A stretch of 64,000 bases of DNA from Prasinococcaceae sp. CCMP 1430 (lineage: Eukaryota; Plantae; Prasinodermophyta): the NCBI GenBank assembly GCA_013416795.1, contig RQSC01001018.1, positions 1,908 through 65,907 of the forward strand. The letters are read 5' to 3'. Both the position numbers and the translations under genes were made by a program. Shown here in pieces: positions 1,035-45,929 of this stretch. The notes beneath the pieces are model-generated. The model had not been told where the DNA came from, did not search any database, and saw only the letters and a list, made by a program, of their open reading frames with translations. Every line of letters starts with the position of its first letter. Position 1 is the first letter of the stretch.

Positions 1035-2147
1035 CCCATCGAAGCTGGAGACAGCCGCCGGCAGCAGCGGCGGGAACAGCTGCGACGGCGATCGCAGCGT
1101 GGATGCAGGGAAGCATTTCGCAGCAGCAACGCGTGGCGCGCACGCCGGGGGTCCCTGCTCCAACAGGTCCCCCGCCGGCGGCGCGAGCGTGTGGGCTGCG
1201 CGCGCGCCTCGAAGGGCGCGATAATGAACAGTGAAAATGACACGAAAGTACGGCCGTGCGACCCATGAGTCGGAGGCACGCCCCACCTGTTGGCCGCTCG
1301 GCAAGGGTGCAATGAACACTAAAAGAAAACTTTCTGCAATGATCGACGGCGTCCGAAGCGGGGACGCGCTCGCGCACGCGACGCGCCCCGCGCGCGCGCG
1401 GCGTCGGCCGCCACACGCCCCCCCCCCGCTCGTCGGGTGCGTCTGGTGGCGTGGAACGGCGCCGCAACCCCCAAGGCCGCGCCCACAGCCACGCGGCACA
1501 GCTATAGAGCAGTCACACCACCACCATCAACGGTAGCTCCTGTGCTGTACGGTACGGTGCACAGTACTGTATGGGGTTTGATTTGTTTGGGGTTTTGTTT
1601 TATAGGGTTTATTTTGTATGCGTGGCACGTGTGCACGTGCGTCTGTGATGTGATGAGCGCGTGAGCGCGCGCTGAGTGCGCGCGGCGCCGGATTGAGCAG
1701 CAGGGGCCTGGGCTGGCGTGCCGGCCGCCACGGGCGGGCGCCGCTGGCTCGCTCGCCCGCGCGGCGCCTCCGCCCCCGCACCACCCGCACGGCCCCGAGG
1801 GAGCGCGGGCGGGGAGGGCGCCAGAGCTGGCGCGGCTGGCGCAGCTGACGCCGGCGGGCACCCGGGAAGAGGGAGGTGGGGGGGGGCGAGGGCCGGGGAC
1901 GGGCGGGGGGGTGAGGGGCGTGAGGCCGCGGCGGGGGCGGGCGCTACAGAGAGAGCGGCCGGGCCTATCCGCGCGCGAGAGAGAGAGAGCCGACGGCGGC
2001 GGTGGCGGCGCGGGTGCAAGCGCGGGGAACGGGGTAAGGCGGTGGCCGGCGCTAGTCACAGGCGCAAGCAAGAGGTGCGGAGACGAAGCGAGAAAGCGTC
2101 CGGAAAAGAAGGGCGGCCGGGCCGAGACTACACCCAAAAATAGCGCC

Positions 2148-2966
2148 ATGGCGGCGACTGTGGTTCGTGGTGGGCGTCGAGCGGGTCGCGGCAGGACATG
2201 GGAGGCGCGCGGAGTGATTGTGGCGAGCATCCTCGCGCTCGCGGTACAACGCGCGAGCGCGAGCTTCACGCGCGAGAGCGCGAGCTTCGCGCGACGCATG
2301 CTCGCCCCGCCGCAGCCCGAGTCGCAGCTGTCATACGAGGACGCTCGTGCCTCTGCCAGTGGTAGTGGTGGCACTGCCGCTGGGAAGGAGGAGCTGCCCC
2401 CGCCGCGCTTGTGCATCCTCGACCGTTTCGGCGTCGAGGGGTCGGGCGTGAGCGAGAACGAGTTCCTCACTCGCCTCGACATCGCCATGGCGGACAACAT
2501 GCGCATTTACAAATTCTTGAGCTACTCACGGCCCCTTGCGGACCGCGTGTTCACTCCAGAGCATGACACGCTCTTCAAGGGCACGGACGCTGCCGTCATC
2601 GAAGAGACGCAGGGGCCCCTCCTGTCCGAGAGGCCCCCGGTGAGCGACTACGCCGAGCGCTGGCAGTACCCGTACGTGAGCCCACCGACATATCCGTACG
2701 GCCCGTGTGCGGCCGACCTCATCGCACAGTCGCAGGCGCCGGCCTCGAAGTGGCTCATGGTGAGCGGGCGGTCGCGCACGTACTTCATCTCCAATAACGA
2801 CAAGCTCGGGTGCCTCGGGCGCGCGGTGGGCGCCGCGAGCTCCGACAAGCCGACCGTGCTGCTCATGGACGACAACCCGCACTCGAAGGGGGGAGTCGCG
2901 CGCGAGCGCGCGCTCGCTGGCAGGGTGGGCGGCGGCGCGCACGCACGTCGTCCATGCACGAGCTGA
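2148..2966 (+). CDS. Hypothetical secreted or membrane-anchored protein
   Basis: ATG at 2148 in a gccATGg context, in frame with ORF 1911..2966. Hydrophobic N-terminal segment (VIVASILALAVQRASA) and GC3-rich coding-like codons from 2400 to 2890. The 3' end overlaps the opposite-strand gene. Confidence 0.6.
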   Translation: MAATVVRGGRRAGRGRTWEARGVIVASILALAVQRASASFTRESASFARRMLAPPQPESQLSYEDARASASGSGGTAAGKEELPPPRLCILDRFGVEGSGVSENEFLTRLDIAMADNMRIYKFLSYSRPLADRVFTPEHDTLFKGTDAAVIEETQGPLLSERPPVSDYAERWQYPYVSPPTYPYGPCAADLIAQSQAPASKWLMVSGRSRTYFISNNDKLGCLGRAVGAASSDKPTVLLMDDNPHSKGGVARERALAGRVGGGAHARRPCTS

Positions 2967-5900
2967 ATCCGACCATTTCGTGCCTGTCGTCTCCGAACCG
3001 GTTCACGAGGAAGTCGCTGAGGCGCTCGAAGGGGAAGTGGTACTCGCAGCGCTCCGCGTACGCCGACTGCGGCACGAAGTGGCAGTCGTCCATGTTGGGA
3101 AACTTGGCGAGATCGGCCAGCACGAGCTCGGTCCACTTGGCCCACGTCTCGCACGTGCACTCGCGCATGTTCAGCGTGTCCCTGATGAACCTCCCGTGGT
3201 GCAACGGCGTGTGTTTGTCGTCGCCAAACTTGAACTGGTATATGAACTCGCTGATGACGCGATCCATCGGCTGGCGGATGAAGCAGTACGAGCCCTTCAC
3301 GAGCCCCGTCGGCAGGCGATGCCACATCGGGCACACTTTGCCGTCCGGCCCGACGTCCTCGACCTCGAAAGGGTTCTCGATGTTCGGATTCAGCCATCCG
3401 GCCCGCGCTCCGCTTTTCGCGTGGTGCTTCTCCATGGCGACGAGCTCGATGCTCGTGCCGCCAGTTTTGGGTATGTGGATGAACTTGTTTTCGTCAATGC
3501 CTGGCTCCAGTGCGGCGGCGTACGGCTCGCGAGGGGCGGGCGGCGGCGGGGGCGGCGAGGGGGCGGGAAACCCCCACGCTGTCGCAGGTGCCAGACATGC
3601 ATACGCCACCACAGCTGCGCTCTGCGCGCCCTCCGCGGTCGCGGCGCCGTCGGAGGCGCGTGTGCGCAGCGCCATGCATCCGTCATCGCCGAGGGTGAAG
3701 CTGGCGTCCGTGGGGCGGCCGTCGTAGTCGCAGATGCGACGCGCGCGCGTGTGCACGGCGGTGTGCAGAGCAAGGCTCTCCAGCACGTCGTTGAGCAGTG
3801 CGTCCTCGCTGGTCACCAGCTGCGTTGGCATGTCGACGCATCGGCCATGCAGGCCCGTGCCCGCAAGCACTGTGGCGCGGGCGGTGAGATCTGCTGTGGC
3901 CGCGGCGCGAGCGAAGAGGCTTGCGCGCGACAGTACTGCGCGAGAGACGGACACCGCTTCCGCGCCTGCGCGCAAAAGGAGCATGCGGGAGCTGAAGGGG
4001 GTGCCGTCGTCGCCGCCATGCTTCAAGCCAATCAATGGCACAGGCGTGTCCGCGCCGTTGGCGGCACTCGTGCGCACGTCACGGAGGCCCGACAACGGAT
4101 CGGCGAAAAGCGGTGCGGGCGTGCCCAGCAGCAGGACGTCGAAGCCGAGCTCGAGCGCTGCCCCTGCATGCTGCCACCGAGGTGGGAAAGAGGGGATCGT
4201 GCTGTCGCCATCGCCGACTCCGGTGCCCTTAGAAACAGCGCAGCACTCACCTGCGCCCGCGCCTTCGCACGTCTCGCGAGTGGACACGAGCAAGACGAAG
4301 CCAACGCCCAGCTCGCGCATGCTCGATGTCGTCTTAGCGCACGCTTCCTCCGCCCCTTCGTCACAGTCGAAGAGTGCGAAGGTATTTGAACGCGCGCAGG
4401 CCTTAGCCGCAGTCACAAAGGCGACTAATGAGTCCGCGTCAAGCAGCGGCCGAGGCGAGCGATCATCGGTGGCAGAAGCGCCGCCGGAATCGGAAGGATC
4501 AAGCCAGGCCGGCAGCGTCTCTGTGGCAGATACCGCGGCGCTACGAGCGGCCTCCCCCTGACCCGCCTGCTCCTGCAGCGGCGCGCTCGGCGTTGTCACA
4601 GCGGGCATGGCCGTGGCATCGACCGCCGCAAACCTAGGCGAGTCCTGAGTGTTTGGTAGCACGCGGCATCTCTGCTTTTCGCCTGGCGTGTTTGCTCGTG
4701 CTGCCAGCGCGCGATCAATGCTCGACAGCGGAGCCACGTTGGCGACGCCCCAAGGCAGGTCCGCGCCCTCGCCAATGTCGATTGTCACAATGGCCTCGGA
4801 GCCGCCAAGGAGTCGAGTAATCTGCGCCGTTCAGGCGCGTGGCGACGCGCGGGATCGTCAGTGCCCCCGAGCTAGCTCGCGCGTGCGAGCGCGTGCATGT
4901 CAACAACGCGTCTACTTGAGCGCGCACCTTCTCCGCGTCAAATGCGTAGCTCGCGTTGGCCGAGGGCGTGCCTGCGTAGCGCCGCCACGTGCGTGCCTCC
5001 CAGGTCACTGTATCGCCGCCGCTCGCAGCGCCCACGTAACCATCGACGAGCAAATCGGCCAATTTGACCTTCTTCACGGCGGCCACCCCACCGGTCTCGG
5101 TCGCAAGCCTGTCCAAGTCGGGCGCGTGCATGAACTCCCATTCCTTGCAGCCAGGATTGGCATACATGACCCACACGCACACTCGCCTGATGGGCTCCGC
5201 AACGTGCGGTGGCTGCGAGAGCGACGCAGATCCTTGCGCTTGGCCCTCGCCGACGGGCATCTGAAACGTCGTCGTCTGACCGGTCCACCACTTGTCTCTC
5301 ACGTTCACCGGAGACTTCTCGCAGATCGTGACTGGGGCCGCCATCATCCGGTCGGCCGCATCGGCCACCATCAGCAGTGATTGCAGCAACTCGTCGAACG
5401 CCACCCTTGAAGGTATGCTCGAGGCCACCAGCGGATGCGCCAGCGCGAGCGCGCGCCGCCTGCGCGCCGCAGGCACGGCCGTGTCCACTCCCTCGACGAG
5501 CTGCCCATCTATGCGCTCGTGGTCCCACGCGCCGCTCACGCGCATGATCACCCCGCGACCAGGATGGGATGCGCCGACCAGGTGCACTATCGACGCGGGC
5601 GCCACGCGCGCACGTCCCCACAGCTCCGCCGGCAACGCTGCCTCACCCACCGCGCAGTCGCGAGCTCGGGTGTGCTGCTGCATGGCCAGGGGGATACCTC
5701 CGAAGAGCTCGTATGGCGCAAAGCCGCCGTACTCGACAAGCCCATCTGCCTCGCCACCGCCGCAGAGCACATCGCCCTCAGCCGCGTCGGTGTTGGCACG
5801 AGCTGCGCGATGGGCGGTCAGCGAGTGCACAAGCGCGCGAGGGTGCACACCCTCGTGCGAAGGGATGTAGCACACTCCCGGCAGCGCCTCGGAATCCAAT

Positions 5901-6961
5901 TCGACCGCGTCGCAATTGTAGTCGCCGACCTCATCGCGATAACGCTTGAGCCAGTGCTCACGCCCAAACTTCTCCCACGCCGTCGCGCGCGCGCCGTACA
6001 AGTGCAGGTCTTTCCCAGTGAAAGCGCTAAGCAAGCAGTCGCGCAGGGTGTCCTGCTCGTCGCTGGTTCGGACCACGACGTGCCTCCTCGCGGCTTCGCT
6101 GTTGAGGTCTGTCTCGTCGCCGATGAGATCGGGGTAGTACATGTTCATCGTGCGCGGATCCTCGAGGTTCCTGTGCACGCGCTCGTAGACCTCGCGGAGC
6201 ACCCAGTGCGCCACTGACCCGCTGCACGCGTGCTGCGCGTACAGGAGGCCACCGTTCGCCCTCGCCTCGTTGCACGGCCCTTCCTGCAAGTGCACGAGCG
6301 ACACGTCCCTCAGAACACCCTTCAGCGCGGGGTAAGGATTGTCGTAGAAGATGACGTCGAGATCGGCCTGGAGCACCCCAAGCCCAAGCTCTGCCCAGCG
6401 GCCGACGAGGCGCTTTCGCGTCGTCCACACGGTGAAAGTCGCCGACTCGGCCATCGAGGCCGTCGGCCCCGCCGCGCCGGTGATCAGGGTCGAGTATGCA
6501 CACGCCAGGCCCGGGCGCTTGTCGCGGAGCGCGTCGCAGTCCGCACGGGTGGGCGCGATAAAGATGTAATGCTCCATGCCAATGTCCTCCAGTTGCTTGA
6601 CGACGTTGACGGCGTATGGCCAGTGGTTGGCGGTGGCGGCAAATACTATGAGCTCGCCGCGGTACGAGCGCGCGCGCGCCACAGCCTGGAGCGCCTCATC
6701 GCTGTCGGCGAGATCGACGGGCTCGATGGGCGCAACCCGGCCAGCCGAGCGGAAGAGTAGGTCGGGCAGAGACCCCGCGTCGACGCCGAACGGACCACAT
6801 GCGCGGAAGCTCGCTGGGCAACGCGTCGCACCCACCCCGGCGCTGGCGGGGAAGACCTCCGAGCGCTGGTCAGCATCGCGCAGCGCTCGACGCGCAACGC
6901 ACGTGCCGCACGACACCAGCAACGAGAACAGCGCGAGGGACCGCGCCACGCCCGCGCGCAT
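2863..6961 (-). CDS. Multidomain glycan-modifying enzyme: GT77-like nucleotide-diphospho-sugar transferase + degenerate second GT77-like domain + Sulfotransfer_2-type sulfotransferase (~1330 aa; exons 6961-4928 and 4821-2863)
   Basis: Signal/anchor MRAGVARSLALFSLLVSC. GT77 motifs: ELGLGVLQADLDVIFYDNPY (DxD), ANGGLLY, SDEQDTL. The intron 4927-4822 (GTGCGC...CACTGAC...CGCAG) joins the two ORFs in frame (EK|ITRLL). Sulfotransferase PAPS-binding motifs: FIHIPKTGGTS and IRQPMDRVISEF. Confidence 0.75.
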
Positions 6962-7033
6962 CGGCGCGGCCCCGGCCGCGGCCGCCGATGTCTCCGCCGG
7001 GGCTCGCCGTCCCTGCGCCGCGGCNNNNNNNNC

Positions 7034-7978
7034 GCGCTGGCCGCGCTCGCGCTCGCGCTTGCGGGCGCCTTCCCGGTCGGGGGCGAGTCGGTCGTCGGCG
7101 CGGGGGGGGAGGCGCGCGAGTGCGGTGCGTGCGGCGCCCCCGTCGCGGAGGACGTGGCGGGCCTGCCACCGCGCGCACCTGCGTCGCCGCCATCGTACGA
7201 GAGCTGCGCGGTCGTGTTCGCCTCCGGGCTGCTGCTTGACTTCGATCTCGGCGAGGAGATCGACGCGCACGACGCTGTGTTCCGCATGAACAAGCACTCG
7301 CCGTGGAAGTTCGAGAGACACGTCGGCCACCGCACCTCGCTTCGCATCATCAACTCGCAGCACGACGGTGAGCACGACATGATGTTCACCGAGTTTACGC
7401 GCGACAGCGAGGTGGTGCTGCTGCGCGACTGGAACACCCGCGCCAAGTCACACGCCGAGTGGCGCAAGCAGAGCAAGTTCGATGTGTTCCGCACGCTGGA
7501 GAGGGCGCGCAAGAGCCATCCGGACAGGCCAATGTTCCTGCTGAGCCGCGGCCTCATGCGGCTCACGGAGGCGTGCGCGGCGCCCACGAACAAGTCGCCG
7601 ACCACCGGGCTGACCGCCGTGCTGGTCGCCCGGCAGCTCTGCGCCAACGTGACAGTGTATGGCGCGGGCTGCCCCGAGTGCGGCTACTATGCGCCGCGCC
7701 GCCGCACGGGCACGTCGCCGAAAGACGCGCGTGCGGGCGGCGCCGAGCAGTTCGGCACACACTTCCAGACCAAGTTCCACAATATGACCGCGGAGATGCG
7801 CTCGCTCACGCGTCTCGCGGGCATGGGAGCCGATGAGATTCGCCAGCGGGGAAGGTTCAGCATCGTGGGCTGCGCAAGCGCTGGCGCACCGGCAGAGGCG
7901 GGCCGGGGTGATAGCGCTGGCGCGGAGGGCGGAGGCGGCGCGGGTGCGCGAGTAGCACGAGCGCGAGCACGAGCGTAA
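7034..7978 (+). CDS. GT29 sialyltransferase-like glycosyltransferase; start probably within or before the N gap at 7025-7032
   Basis: Sialylmotif L (CAVVFASGLLLDFDLGEEIDAHDAVFRMN...HVGHRT), motif S (PTTGLTAVLVARQLCANVTVYG) and VS-like HNMTAE. In-frame hydrophobic anchor ALAALALALAGAF lies immediately after the gap. Confidence 0.85.
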   Translation, partial: ALAALALALAGAFPVGGESVVGAGGEARECGACGAPVAEDVAGLPPRAPASPPSYESCAVVFASGLLLDFDLGEEIDAHDAVFRMNKHSPWKFERHVGHRTSLRIINSQHDGEHDMMFTEFTRDSEVVLLRDWNTRAKSHAEWRKQSKFDVFRTLERARKSHPDRPMFLLSRGLMRLTEACAAPTNKSPTTGLTAVLVARQLCANVTVYGAGCPECGYYAPRRRTGTSPKDARAGGAEQFGTHFQTKFHNMTAEMRSLTRLAGMGADEIRQRGRFSIVGCASAGAPAEAGRGDSAGAEGGGGAGARVARARARA

Positions 7979-8264: not shown

Positions 8265-9280
<1,016 letters not shown>

Positions 9281-22229: not shown

Positions 22230-22435
22230 CTGCGAGCGTCGGCGTCGAGCGCGGTGGGGGCGCGGACACGTCAGTGGGCGCGCACAGGACACAACACACA
22301 GCACGGACCGGCGCCGGGTGGCCGACGCATGAGCGCACACGCCCCAGCGAGCGGCGCCCCAGCGAGAGGGCCGAGCGGCCGGGTGGTGCGGCAAGATGGC
22401 GCGCGTCGGGCCGCGCAGGGCACGCGCCCCGGCCN

Positions 22436-45871: not shown

Positions 45872-45929
45872 NNNNNNNNNNNNNNNNNNNNNNNNNNNNN
45901 NNNNNNNNNNNNNNNNNNNNNNNNNNNNN
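45872..45929. other. Assembly gap (58 N), likely hiding the first RNR2 exon
   Basis: N run followed by intron-like sequence ending ACAG at 46034. Other Ns occur at 7025-7032, 22435, 40929 and 41920. Confidence 0.9.

Follow-up and report, generated by a model that had tools for sequence, protein, structure and literature searches.

A candidate divergent pair of secretory glycan enzyme genes, GT29 and a GT77-type/sulfotransferase fusion, in the green alga Prasinococcaceae sp. CCMP 1430

We lean toward reading the locus in Table 1 as a divergent pair of genes for secretory glycan enzymes, with a proposed joint role in a wall or mucilage glycan, and not as a cluster of three. Positions are those of the window, the whole 64-kb stretch of DNA analyzed. 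The first gene is predicted to be a single-exon GT29 gene whose product has a type II anchor and motifs for a CMP-activated ulosonic acid donor. The second, about 374 nt away on the opposite strand, would have at least three exons and encode more than 1,300 aa, in the predicted order signal/anchor, GT77-type retaining GT-A domain with the DxD intact, extension, middle region, and PAPS-dependent carbohydrate sulfotransferase. What appears to be the front half of a GT47/RXYLT1-like gene is brought up against the sulfotransferase by an unsupported join at 2885/2886, which would also have removed the last exon of the fusion gene. A first-pass annotation had placed three adjacent genes in less than 6 kb here; the adjacency of the GT29 and fusion genes stood, but the third gene is attached via the contradicted 2885/2886 join.

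Table 1. Features of the locus, in window coordinates
Feature	Position	Strand	Description
Truncated first exon, putative GT47/RXYLT1-like glycosyltransferase gene	2148..2885	+	Transcript contig, GC3 periodicity
Breakpoint	2885..2887	.	Window junction without support from any independent sequence
Fusion gene intron 2, first 59 nt	2888..2946	-	Donor GT at 2946-2945, after ...SSCMDD
Sulfotransfer_2 domain	2947..3480	-	PF03567 and PAPS motifs
Fusion gene exon 2, front part	3481..4821	-	Low-complexity linker, conserved middle region (~4431-3700), poly-Pro linker (3555-3538)
Fusion gene intron 1	4822..4927	-	106 nt, GT..AG, phase 0
Fusion gene exon 1	4928..6961	-	N-terminal signal/anchor (MRAGVARSLALFSLLVSCGTCVA), GT77-type GT-A domain, ~320-aa conserved extension of no known family
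Divergent intergenic/promoter region	6962..7033	.	Contains the 8-N gap 7025-7032
GT29 (sialyltransferase-family) gene	7034..7978	+	Single exon; stop codon 7976-7978; PF00777

That the GT77 part and the sulfotransferase part are one gene, and not two, is supported by RNA-derived and comparative evidence. A metatranscriptome run (X1) contains a 4821/4928 joint ("skips 106, CT..AC") that is exactly the predicted splice of intron 1, and the reading frames on either side of this intron join exactly. The same junction is continuous, with no intron 1, in two diverged homologues (L004 and L005). L004 holds the whole GT77 - middle - sulfotransferase order in one frame (58% / 37% identity), which is interrupted by one stop codon, a TGA in frame immediately ahead of the PAPS loop. 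The fusion proposed in the first-pass annotation was thereby confirmed, and its GT29, GT77, and sulfotransferase domain calls were each borne out by a Pfam match (PF00777, PF03407, and PF03567, respectively). All of the encoded products have an N-terminal hydrophobic anchor or signal, as Golgi enzymes do, in line with the secretory-pathway assignment made earlier.

The GT77-type profile PF03407 scores 21.8 bits on the whole ORF against a cutoff of 22, and 23.7 bits when the domain is scanned alone, with an alignment that spans only profile positions 3-119 of 208. Each of three diverged homologues matches the same profile at about 1e-5 to 3e-5. The DxD (ADLDV) lies at 6367-6350, and in an alignment of the window with L004 and L005 the surrounding VLQADLDVI is invariant. 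An AF2 model of the domain built from a 3-sequence alignment had a pLDDT of 42.9 and was unusable for judging the GT-A fold. Homologues of exon 1 share 97% (P0001), 58% (P0002), and 54% (P0004) identity with it. The PF03407 match, invariant DxD, and secretory N-terminus liken the protein to GT77 enzymes such as the Arabidopsis RGXT xylosyltransferases, the RRA/XEG113 extensin arabinosyltransferases, and Dictyostelium AgtA. It is unlike them in that its single polypeptide also includes the ~320-aa extension, a further conserved region, and a sulfotransferase, and in a Pfam score that barely clears the threshold. We know of no named GT77 enzyme among these (RGXT, RRA/XEG113, AgtA) with such an extension, middle region, or sulfotransferase.

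The middle region is 35% identical to that of L004, the conserved blocks including LNDVLESL and RRxCDxDGRxTD, and has no Pfam match in either species. We considered whether it could be a second, DxD-less "pseudo-GT77"; this was not demonstrated, the comparison with the GT77 domain giving E=0.14 by BLASTP and E=0.12 by hhalign (probability 0.5%). An AF2 model of the region had a pLDDT of 33. Two short local resemblances to GT77, RW..G..DV.. and E.A.LNDVL, follow each other in the expected order and are a lead only.

PF03567 (Sulfotransfer_2) matches the window at 6e-05 (23.7 bits against a cutoff of 22) and the L004 homologue at 1.5e-08 (35.5 bits). The domain has the PAPS 5'-phosphosulfate loop IHIPKTGGTS (3480-3451), the 3'-phosphate motif FIRQPMDRVIS (3285-3247), and a CHFVPQSAY block (3084-3058). 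A PDB search with it found no detectable sequence relative. In the window, the Pfam scores of the GT77 and sulfotransferase domains both fall just over their cutoffs. The 5'-PSB loop PKTGGTS, the 3'-PB RxPxxRxxS, and the H-x-x-P-Q block are as in Golgi Sulfotransfer_2 enzymes of the animal CHST/HS2ST type, from which the window enzyme differs in lying at the C-terminus of a glycosyltransferase and in having its last exon missing from the window. Like NDST (N-deacetylase/N-sulfotransferase), the fusion combines a sulfotransferase with another glycan activity in one secretory polypeptide; unlike NDST, its partner domain is of the GT77 type. Our literature search turned up no account of an algal GT-sulfotransferase fusion.

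The window lacks the fusion gene's last exon; there the sulfotransferase domain breaks off where the donor of intron 2 begins (2947). This donor, GTGCGT, is directly readable, and two metatranscriptome contigs (X1 rec1 and X2 rec9) exit the window exactly at 2947. L004 has 39 more residues past the aligned end, and by comparison with it the missing exon would encode about 30-40 aa. We expect a complete sulfotransferase domain to be present in the true genome.

The sequence is lost at the 2885/2886 join, which is probably an assembly collapse or chimeric join. From the left, a transcript contig of the same organism has 0 mismatches over 2100-2885 and then departs from the window, and nine metagenome contigs (L013-L017, L018-L020) also contradict the join. 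From the right, both L001 and L002 part from the window at 2887, and the end of L011 is at 2888. Because the join is contradicted from both sides, the third gene is truncated and its adjacency is unsupported. The true continuation past 2885 runs for at least 4.9 kb, through the rest of that gene, a gene for a 125-aa membrane protein, and a GH27 gene, and is absent from the entire 64-kb window. As assembled, the locus is wrong at 2885/2886 and incomplete at 7025-7032, and three genes come out truncated in gene models based on it.

Such a collapse could hide a larger real cluster with the true order GT47-like, GH27, GT77-sulfotransferase, GT29, which we think unlikely. On this reading, the stretch lost between 2885 and 2887 would comprise at least 5 kb, with the rest of the GT47-like gene, the 125-aa membrane protein gene, and the GH27 alpha-galactosidase gene. 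At the breakpoint, each side breaks off cleanly at a single base, the typical pattern of a local collapse, beside a poly-C/G tract that is also an end point of metagenome contigs, and the lost sequence bears two further carbohydrate-active genes. However, no contig bridges the two sides, and L018, which extends 4.9 kb past 2885, never reaches the stretch of 60 nt found after 2887 in L001.

A true strain-specific rearrangement, truncating a duplicate GT47-like copy as well as the fusion gene at its 3' end, is more improbable still. Of the words sampled from 2100-7024, a share of 0.99 is found in DNA runs labeled as this organism, and the 2885/2886 junction may therefore exist in the reads; this share nevertheless leaves room for the few junction-spanning words to be missing. 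Moreover, past 2885 the transcript contig of the organism itself runs on in the same way as the relatives, and the rearrangement would inactivate a conserved, expressed sulfotransferase. The divergent pair, with a probably artificial join on its left, is the reading we carry forward.

The third gene had been described as coding for a secreted unknown, a description at odds with the relatives' version of the gene. Its product begins with an Arg-rich stretch followed by a hydrophobic anchor, and GC3 periodicity agrees with its frame. In the relatives an 80-nt intron and a second exon follow, for about 504 aa in total, and the continuation SQLNETLMQE... is given by both P0009 and L013. For the second exon, the PDB matches are exostosin-GT47 proteins (8q8i, 8avq, and 8asa, including chlorovirus A075L; E=1.7e-5), and its match to Atlas RXYLT1_C clusters scores 0.96-0.97; the Pfam Exostosin_GT47 match of the gene has an E of 0.19 only. 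On these homologies, the third gene is the 5' half of a predicted GT47/RXYLT1-like glycosyltransferase gene. The PDB and Atlas matches liken it to the chlorovirus PBCV-1 A075L and RXYLT1-type exostosin (GT47-like) xylosyltransferases. It differs from them in its N-terminal half, the only half in the window, which has no relative but itself among 1.84 billion representatives.

On the right side of the locus, PF00777 matches 7154-7978 at E=1.1e-25 (91.1 bits against a cutoff of 23). The full-length GT29 copy in L001, of 333 aa, scores 5.2e-26 (92.1 bits), and the PDB match is to ST6Gal1 structures (E=6.9e-15). We take CAVVFASG...RMN (7205...) to be sialyl motif L, PTTGLTAV...YG (7598...) motif S, and HNMTAE (7778-7795) the H-x4-E of motif VS, each assigned by resemblance to the family and not with a curated model. 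The site presumably corresponding to motif III reads GYYAP (7679...), the usual type being H/Y-Y-x-E. In the window the frame is open already from 7034, and the bridging sequence of relatives places the start codon and the first 18-19 codons inside the gap 7025-7032. The gene product has a type II anchor (ALAALALALAGA), and the complete N-terminus, with an RRR tail and a hydrophobic anchor, is seen in L001. Metatranscriptome contigs cover 7140-7941.

The nearest named algal protein, from Pycnococcus, is 32% identical. The fold signature, putative sialyl motifs L, S, and VS, type II anchor, and green lineage are shared with plant and prasinophyte GT29 enzymes (PMC13213038, PMC5811610). The systems compared were the Arabidopsis RG-II CMP-Kdo transferase MGP2/RCKT1 and the expanded GT29 families of Bathycoccus and Pseudoscourfieldia. 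The window GT29 is unlike these in its low identity to the Pycnococcus protein, its GYYAP at motif III, and its scale-less host.

The head-to-head arrangement of the GT29 gene (+) and the fusion gene (-), noted in the first-pass annotation, was upheld when the gap between them was examined as a possible large false join. Positions 7025-7032 are bridged identically, by 367 nt, in four independent contigs of marine metagenomes that come from different samples (L001, L002, L011, and L012; 98-99% identity), so the gap is not such a join. The bridging 367 nt carry the GT29 start and membrane anchor, and the two ATGs are about 374 nt apart in these relatives. The adjacency is conserved in the 98-99% identical populations only; contigs of relatives at 50-58% identity end at or inside the intergenic region, and scans of JGI metagenomes for the adjacency in relatives came back blank. 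Both genes are present in two marine metatranscriptomes, in the same sea-water samples, the contigs showing presence and not level. The first-pass annotation had set the locus among unrelated housekeeping genes, which holds for the right flank (Ras, a chlorophyllase-like hydrolase, and THO2).

A substantial, if lesser, possibility is that the two are chance neighbors in a compact genome, functionally unrelated and acting on different glycans. The genome is reported with 7,139 genes and 83 GTs (PMC7455551). We estimate that about 100-130 GT/ST genes placed at random would give about 1-2.5 adjacent pairs genome-wide; head-to-head pairs are common in compact genomes, and the synteny is seen in near-identical populations only. 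However, a GT or ST would be the single divergent partner of GT29 in only about 1-2% of cases by our estimate. The divergent partner of the 32%-identical Pycnococcus GT29 is a DEAD helicase, neither a GT77 nor a sulfotransferase gene. We retain the functional pair as the preferred reading.

The keto-sugar (Kdo/Dha) product suggested in the first-pass annotation is an idea borrowed from scaly prasinophytes and land-plant RG-II, and is not supported. In Arabidopsis RG-II, Kdo is transferred by a GT29, and GT29 has also been linked to Kdo-rich scales (PMC13213038, PMC11288761, PMC5811610). The host alga is wall-bound with no scales, and there is no chemical description of the Prasinoderma wall (PMC7455551). 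The host is a GC-rich marine green alga.

We propose that, in the Golgi lumen, the fusion protein would attach both a sugar and a sulfate to one growing glycan of the wall or mucilage, the tether holding both active sites on one acceptor. A possible role of GT29 is the addition of an acidic keto-sugar, to this polymer or to a different one, and the short shared upstream region could drive the two genes together. A wider reading, which we put forward tentatively and think improbable in full, is that this early-branching green alga, like its uncultured marine relatives, makes a surface polymer that is both sulfated and acidic by means of enzymes hard-wired to one another. A GT77-type enzyme would be tethered to its own sulfotransferase and share one bidirectional promoter with a GT29 ulosonic-acid transferase, as one case of a genome-wide fusing or pairing of GTs and sulfotransferases. 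To our knowledge, no green microalga has had a sulfated-polysaccharide pathway worked out enzyme by enzyme. Where a glycosyltransferase and a sulfotransferase share one polypeptide, an experimenter learns which two activities have a common acceptor, and the divergent GT29 partner is a third candidate enzyme for the same polymer.

The stretch is eukaryotic in character, with 65-72% GC and a strong third-position GC periodicity, which marks three coding runs at the locus. Pfam recognizes GT29, GT77-type and sulfotransferase domains there (see table); the scores of the latter two are slightly below the cutoff on whole ORFs and slightly above it when each domain is taken alone. No Pfam family was assigned to the plus-strand ORF at 2148, and NCBIfam returned no relevant match. 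Spliced gene models were searched one exon at a time. The window also has single Ns at 22435, 40929, and 41920 and a 58-N gap at 45872-45929. Gene models crossing these positions may be incomplete, as at 7025-7032.

Features of the locus and of contigs carrying its relatives (window positions unless a contig, L001 to L018, is named)
Feature	Position	Strand	Basis or remark
Coding run	~2250-2850	+	Third-position GC periodicity
Coding run, frame change near 4800	2850-6900	-	Third-position GC periodicity
Coding run	~7050 to 7700	+	Third-position GC periodicity
GT29 (PF00777)	ORF 7154-7978	+	Pfam, 1.1e-25
Nucleotid_trans/GT77 (PF03407)	ORF 4715-7375	-	Pfam
Sulfotransfer_2 (PF03567), at ORF end	ORF 2863-4788	-	Pfam
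Fusion gene, exon 1	4928-6961	-	
Fusion gene, exon 2	2947-4821	-	
Ras/Rab-type small GTPase gene, multi-exon	8268-8615; L001:671-1440		Directly 3' of GT29, opposite strand
GT47-like gene, second exon	L013:904-1617		
GH27 alpha-galactosidase (Melibiase_2) gene	L018:310-2127		Downstream of GT47-like gene in relatives
125-aa multi-pass membrane protein gene	L018:3579-3956		Downstream of GT47-like gene in relatives
Fusion-gene relative, shorter	L005:100-2526		Also in L006-L008
Tandem GT29 relative	L009:72-1748		

On the minus strand the two ORFs overlap but are read in different frames, and splice sites at 4928/4927 (AAG/GTGCGC) and 4822/4821 (GCGCAG/ATT) join those frames exactly. A marine metatranscriptome contig carries this joint, skipping 106 letters with CT..AC borders, its short side being 27 letters. 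Two diverged relatives lack the intron. In L004 (58% identity over exon 1, 37% over exon 2) both parts are contiguous, and the junction in the shorter L005 (49% identity) is likewise uninterrupted. The GT77 domain, middle region and sulfotransferase of L004 follow one another in one frame, except for a sole in-frame TGA (L004:3484-3486, one contig) that falls after the poly-Pro linker and just ahead of the PAPS loop. This stop could reflect a sequencing error, polymorphism or a pseudogene. The transcript joint, the contiguity in both relatives and the single-frame order in L004 show that the GT77-sulfotransferase fusion proposed in the first-pass annotation is real. We found no paper on a glycosyltransferase-sulfotransferase fusion in algae, and the fusion is new. 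Its closest known functional parallel is the animal NDST.

The fusion gene begins with an ATG at 6961, and a hydrophobic, signal-like stretch comes next. The DxD in VLQADLDVI is invariant across three lineages, and the sulfotransferase signatures PKTGGTS, RQPMDRVIS, and CHFVPQ are intact in the window. About 320 residues after the GT77 domain and about 250 before the sulfotransferase are conserved, with no family found for either in Pfam. The middle region was considered as a second, DxD-less GT77, a reading not supported by BLASTP (E=0.14), hhalign (E=0.12) or Pfam (no match); two short resemblances to GT77 in the correct order are a lead and no more. AlphaFold2 models of the middle region (pLDDT 33) and of the GT77 domain (pLDDT 43) were unusable, and a word search with exon 2 gave no match inside the length range searched. 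At 2947, where a GTGCGT donor comes after ...SSCMDD, metatranscriptome contigs depart from the window, so a second intron is present in the gene. The last exon is absent from the window and is expected, by comparison with L004, to encode about 30-40 residues.

The gene in L005, from the same Tara sample as L001, is a shorter paralogue or orthologue with the GT77 domain and extension only. It has neither middle region nor sulfotransferase, and a DDAH_eukar gene follows it. NCBI lists, under a 'Pseudomonadota bacterium' MAG, a 380-aa fragment (P0003) that shares 97% identity with the algal GT77 protein; its contig is probably eukaryotic and was wrongly binned with bacterial sequence.

Marine metagenome contigs, those of Tara Oceans among them, carry an ORF 97% identical to exon 1. 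Four of these contigs, from different samples (L001, L002, L011, L012), align on either side of the 8-N gap (7025-7032) with 98-99% identity, and all four bridge it with 367-368 nt. The concern raised in the first-pass annotation that the gap might hide a large false join is answered by these contigs: the join is correct, the gap is small and the head-to-head layout of the GT29 and fusion genes is real. The ATG at 6988 was rejected as the GT29 start, the real one (MTAAGARRRASLAGPSPALALAALALALAG...) lying inside the gap stretch, where a short basic tail precedes a hydrophobic anchor. The gap had concealed the first 18-19 codons. With them the product is a 333-aa type II protein encoded in a single exon, and the start codons of the two genes are about 374 nt apart. 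The Ras/Rab-type GTPase gene keeps its position next to GT29 in all near-identical contigs. In L009, the run that holds a 50%-identical GT29 relative has two GT29 domains in tandem, predicted as a single ORF of 558 aa; the contig starts within the first domain.

The third gene of the proposed cluster runs into a break at 2885/2886. A 2,465-nt transcript contig from a run labelled with the same organism has no mismatches over 2100-2885 and then continues with TCTCAGCTGAATGAG..., which is absent from the window. The single relative in a full-library protein search (P0009, 99% identity) reads SQLNETLMQE... after ...MDDNPHS, the translation of these off-window letters. The DNA contigs L013-L017 and the longer L018-L020 also match the window to exactly 2885 and then continue for up to 4.9 kb through an 80-nt GT..AG intron, that gene's second exon, and the membrane-protein and GH27 genes, none of which occurs anywhere in the 64-kb window. 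An intron at 2885 was rejected, as position 2886 offers no GT donor and the DNA contigs continue identically. Positions 1-2885 are collinear with relatives, L020 covering 518-2885. Read in the opposite direction, L001 and L002 agree with the window as far as 2887, beyond which they have 60 nt of different GC-rich sequence, and L011 ends in a poly-C run at 2888. No transcript or metagenome contig contains the junction of 1-2885 with 2887-64000. The longest contig reaching out through the two neighboring genes, L018, falls short of the fusion gene. At least 4.9 kb, two and a half genes, is lost. The simplest reading of these sequences would be that the assembly collapsed or made a chimeric join here; a rearrangement specific to the strain could also account for them but is less likely. 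The locus lies in a badly assembled stretch.

The window holds only the first 246 codons of this gene. Its second exon matches three exostosin-GT47-domain entries in the PDB (E=1.7e-5), including chlorovirus A075L, its nearest ESM-Atlas clusters carry RXYLT1_C (scores 0.96-0.97), and Pfam Exostosin_GT47 is faint (E=0.19). From these matches the gene most likely encodes a divergent GT47/RXYLT1-like glycosyltransferase, about 504 aa long and carrying a type II anchor. The N-terminal half found only itself in the full-library search and had no usable match in the Atlas; a JGI metagenome scan with the third-gene query was blank. The 'secreted unknown' of the first-pass annotation is thus a cut gene, attached through an unsupported join, and the three-gene cluster is not supported. 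The second exon is most similar to giant-virus proteins, namely the A075L structures and Atlas clusters with a Nucleocytoviricota share of 80-98%, a hint that algae and giant viruses may have exchanged genes.

Contigs of two marine metatranscriptomes cover 2947-6232 and 7140-7941, so both genes of the pair are transcribed, these data showing presence and not level. Among diverged relatives, L004 starts 30 nt 5' of its start codon and does not overlap L009, and a JGI metagenome scan with the GT77 alignment was blank. A Pycnococcus GT29, 32% identical and not an orthologue, belongs to a set of about a hundred paralogues (PMC13213038); the gene divergent from it encodes a DEAD helicase. The genome paper's supplementary tables searched gave no counts of GT29, GT77 or sulfotransferase genes. 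The GC content here fits the 69.8% published for Prasinoderma coloniale. Using that genome (7,139 genes, 83 GTs; PMC7455551) and an assumed some tens of sulfotransferases, we roughly estimate a 1-2% chance that the GT29 gene has a glycosyltransferase or sulfotransferase as divergent partner, and one to a few such pairs by chance genome-wide. A single pair as a functional module is therefore suggestive, not significant.

Green-lineage GT29 enzymes have been associated with the transfer of Kdo in RG-II and with Kdo-rich scales (PMC11288761, PMC13213038, PMC5811610). The alga here has a wall of uncharacterized chemistry and no scales (PMC7455551), which makes a keto-acid product an analogy, with no specific product supported. 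What stands at the locus is a genuine divergent gene pair, both members expressed: a GT29 gene and a GT77-sulfotransferase fusion.
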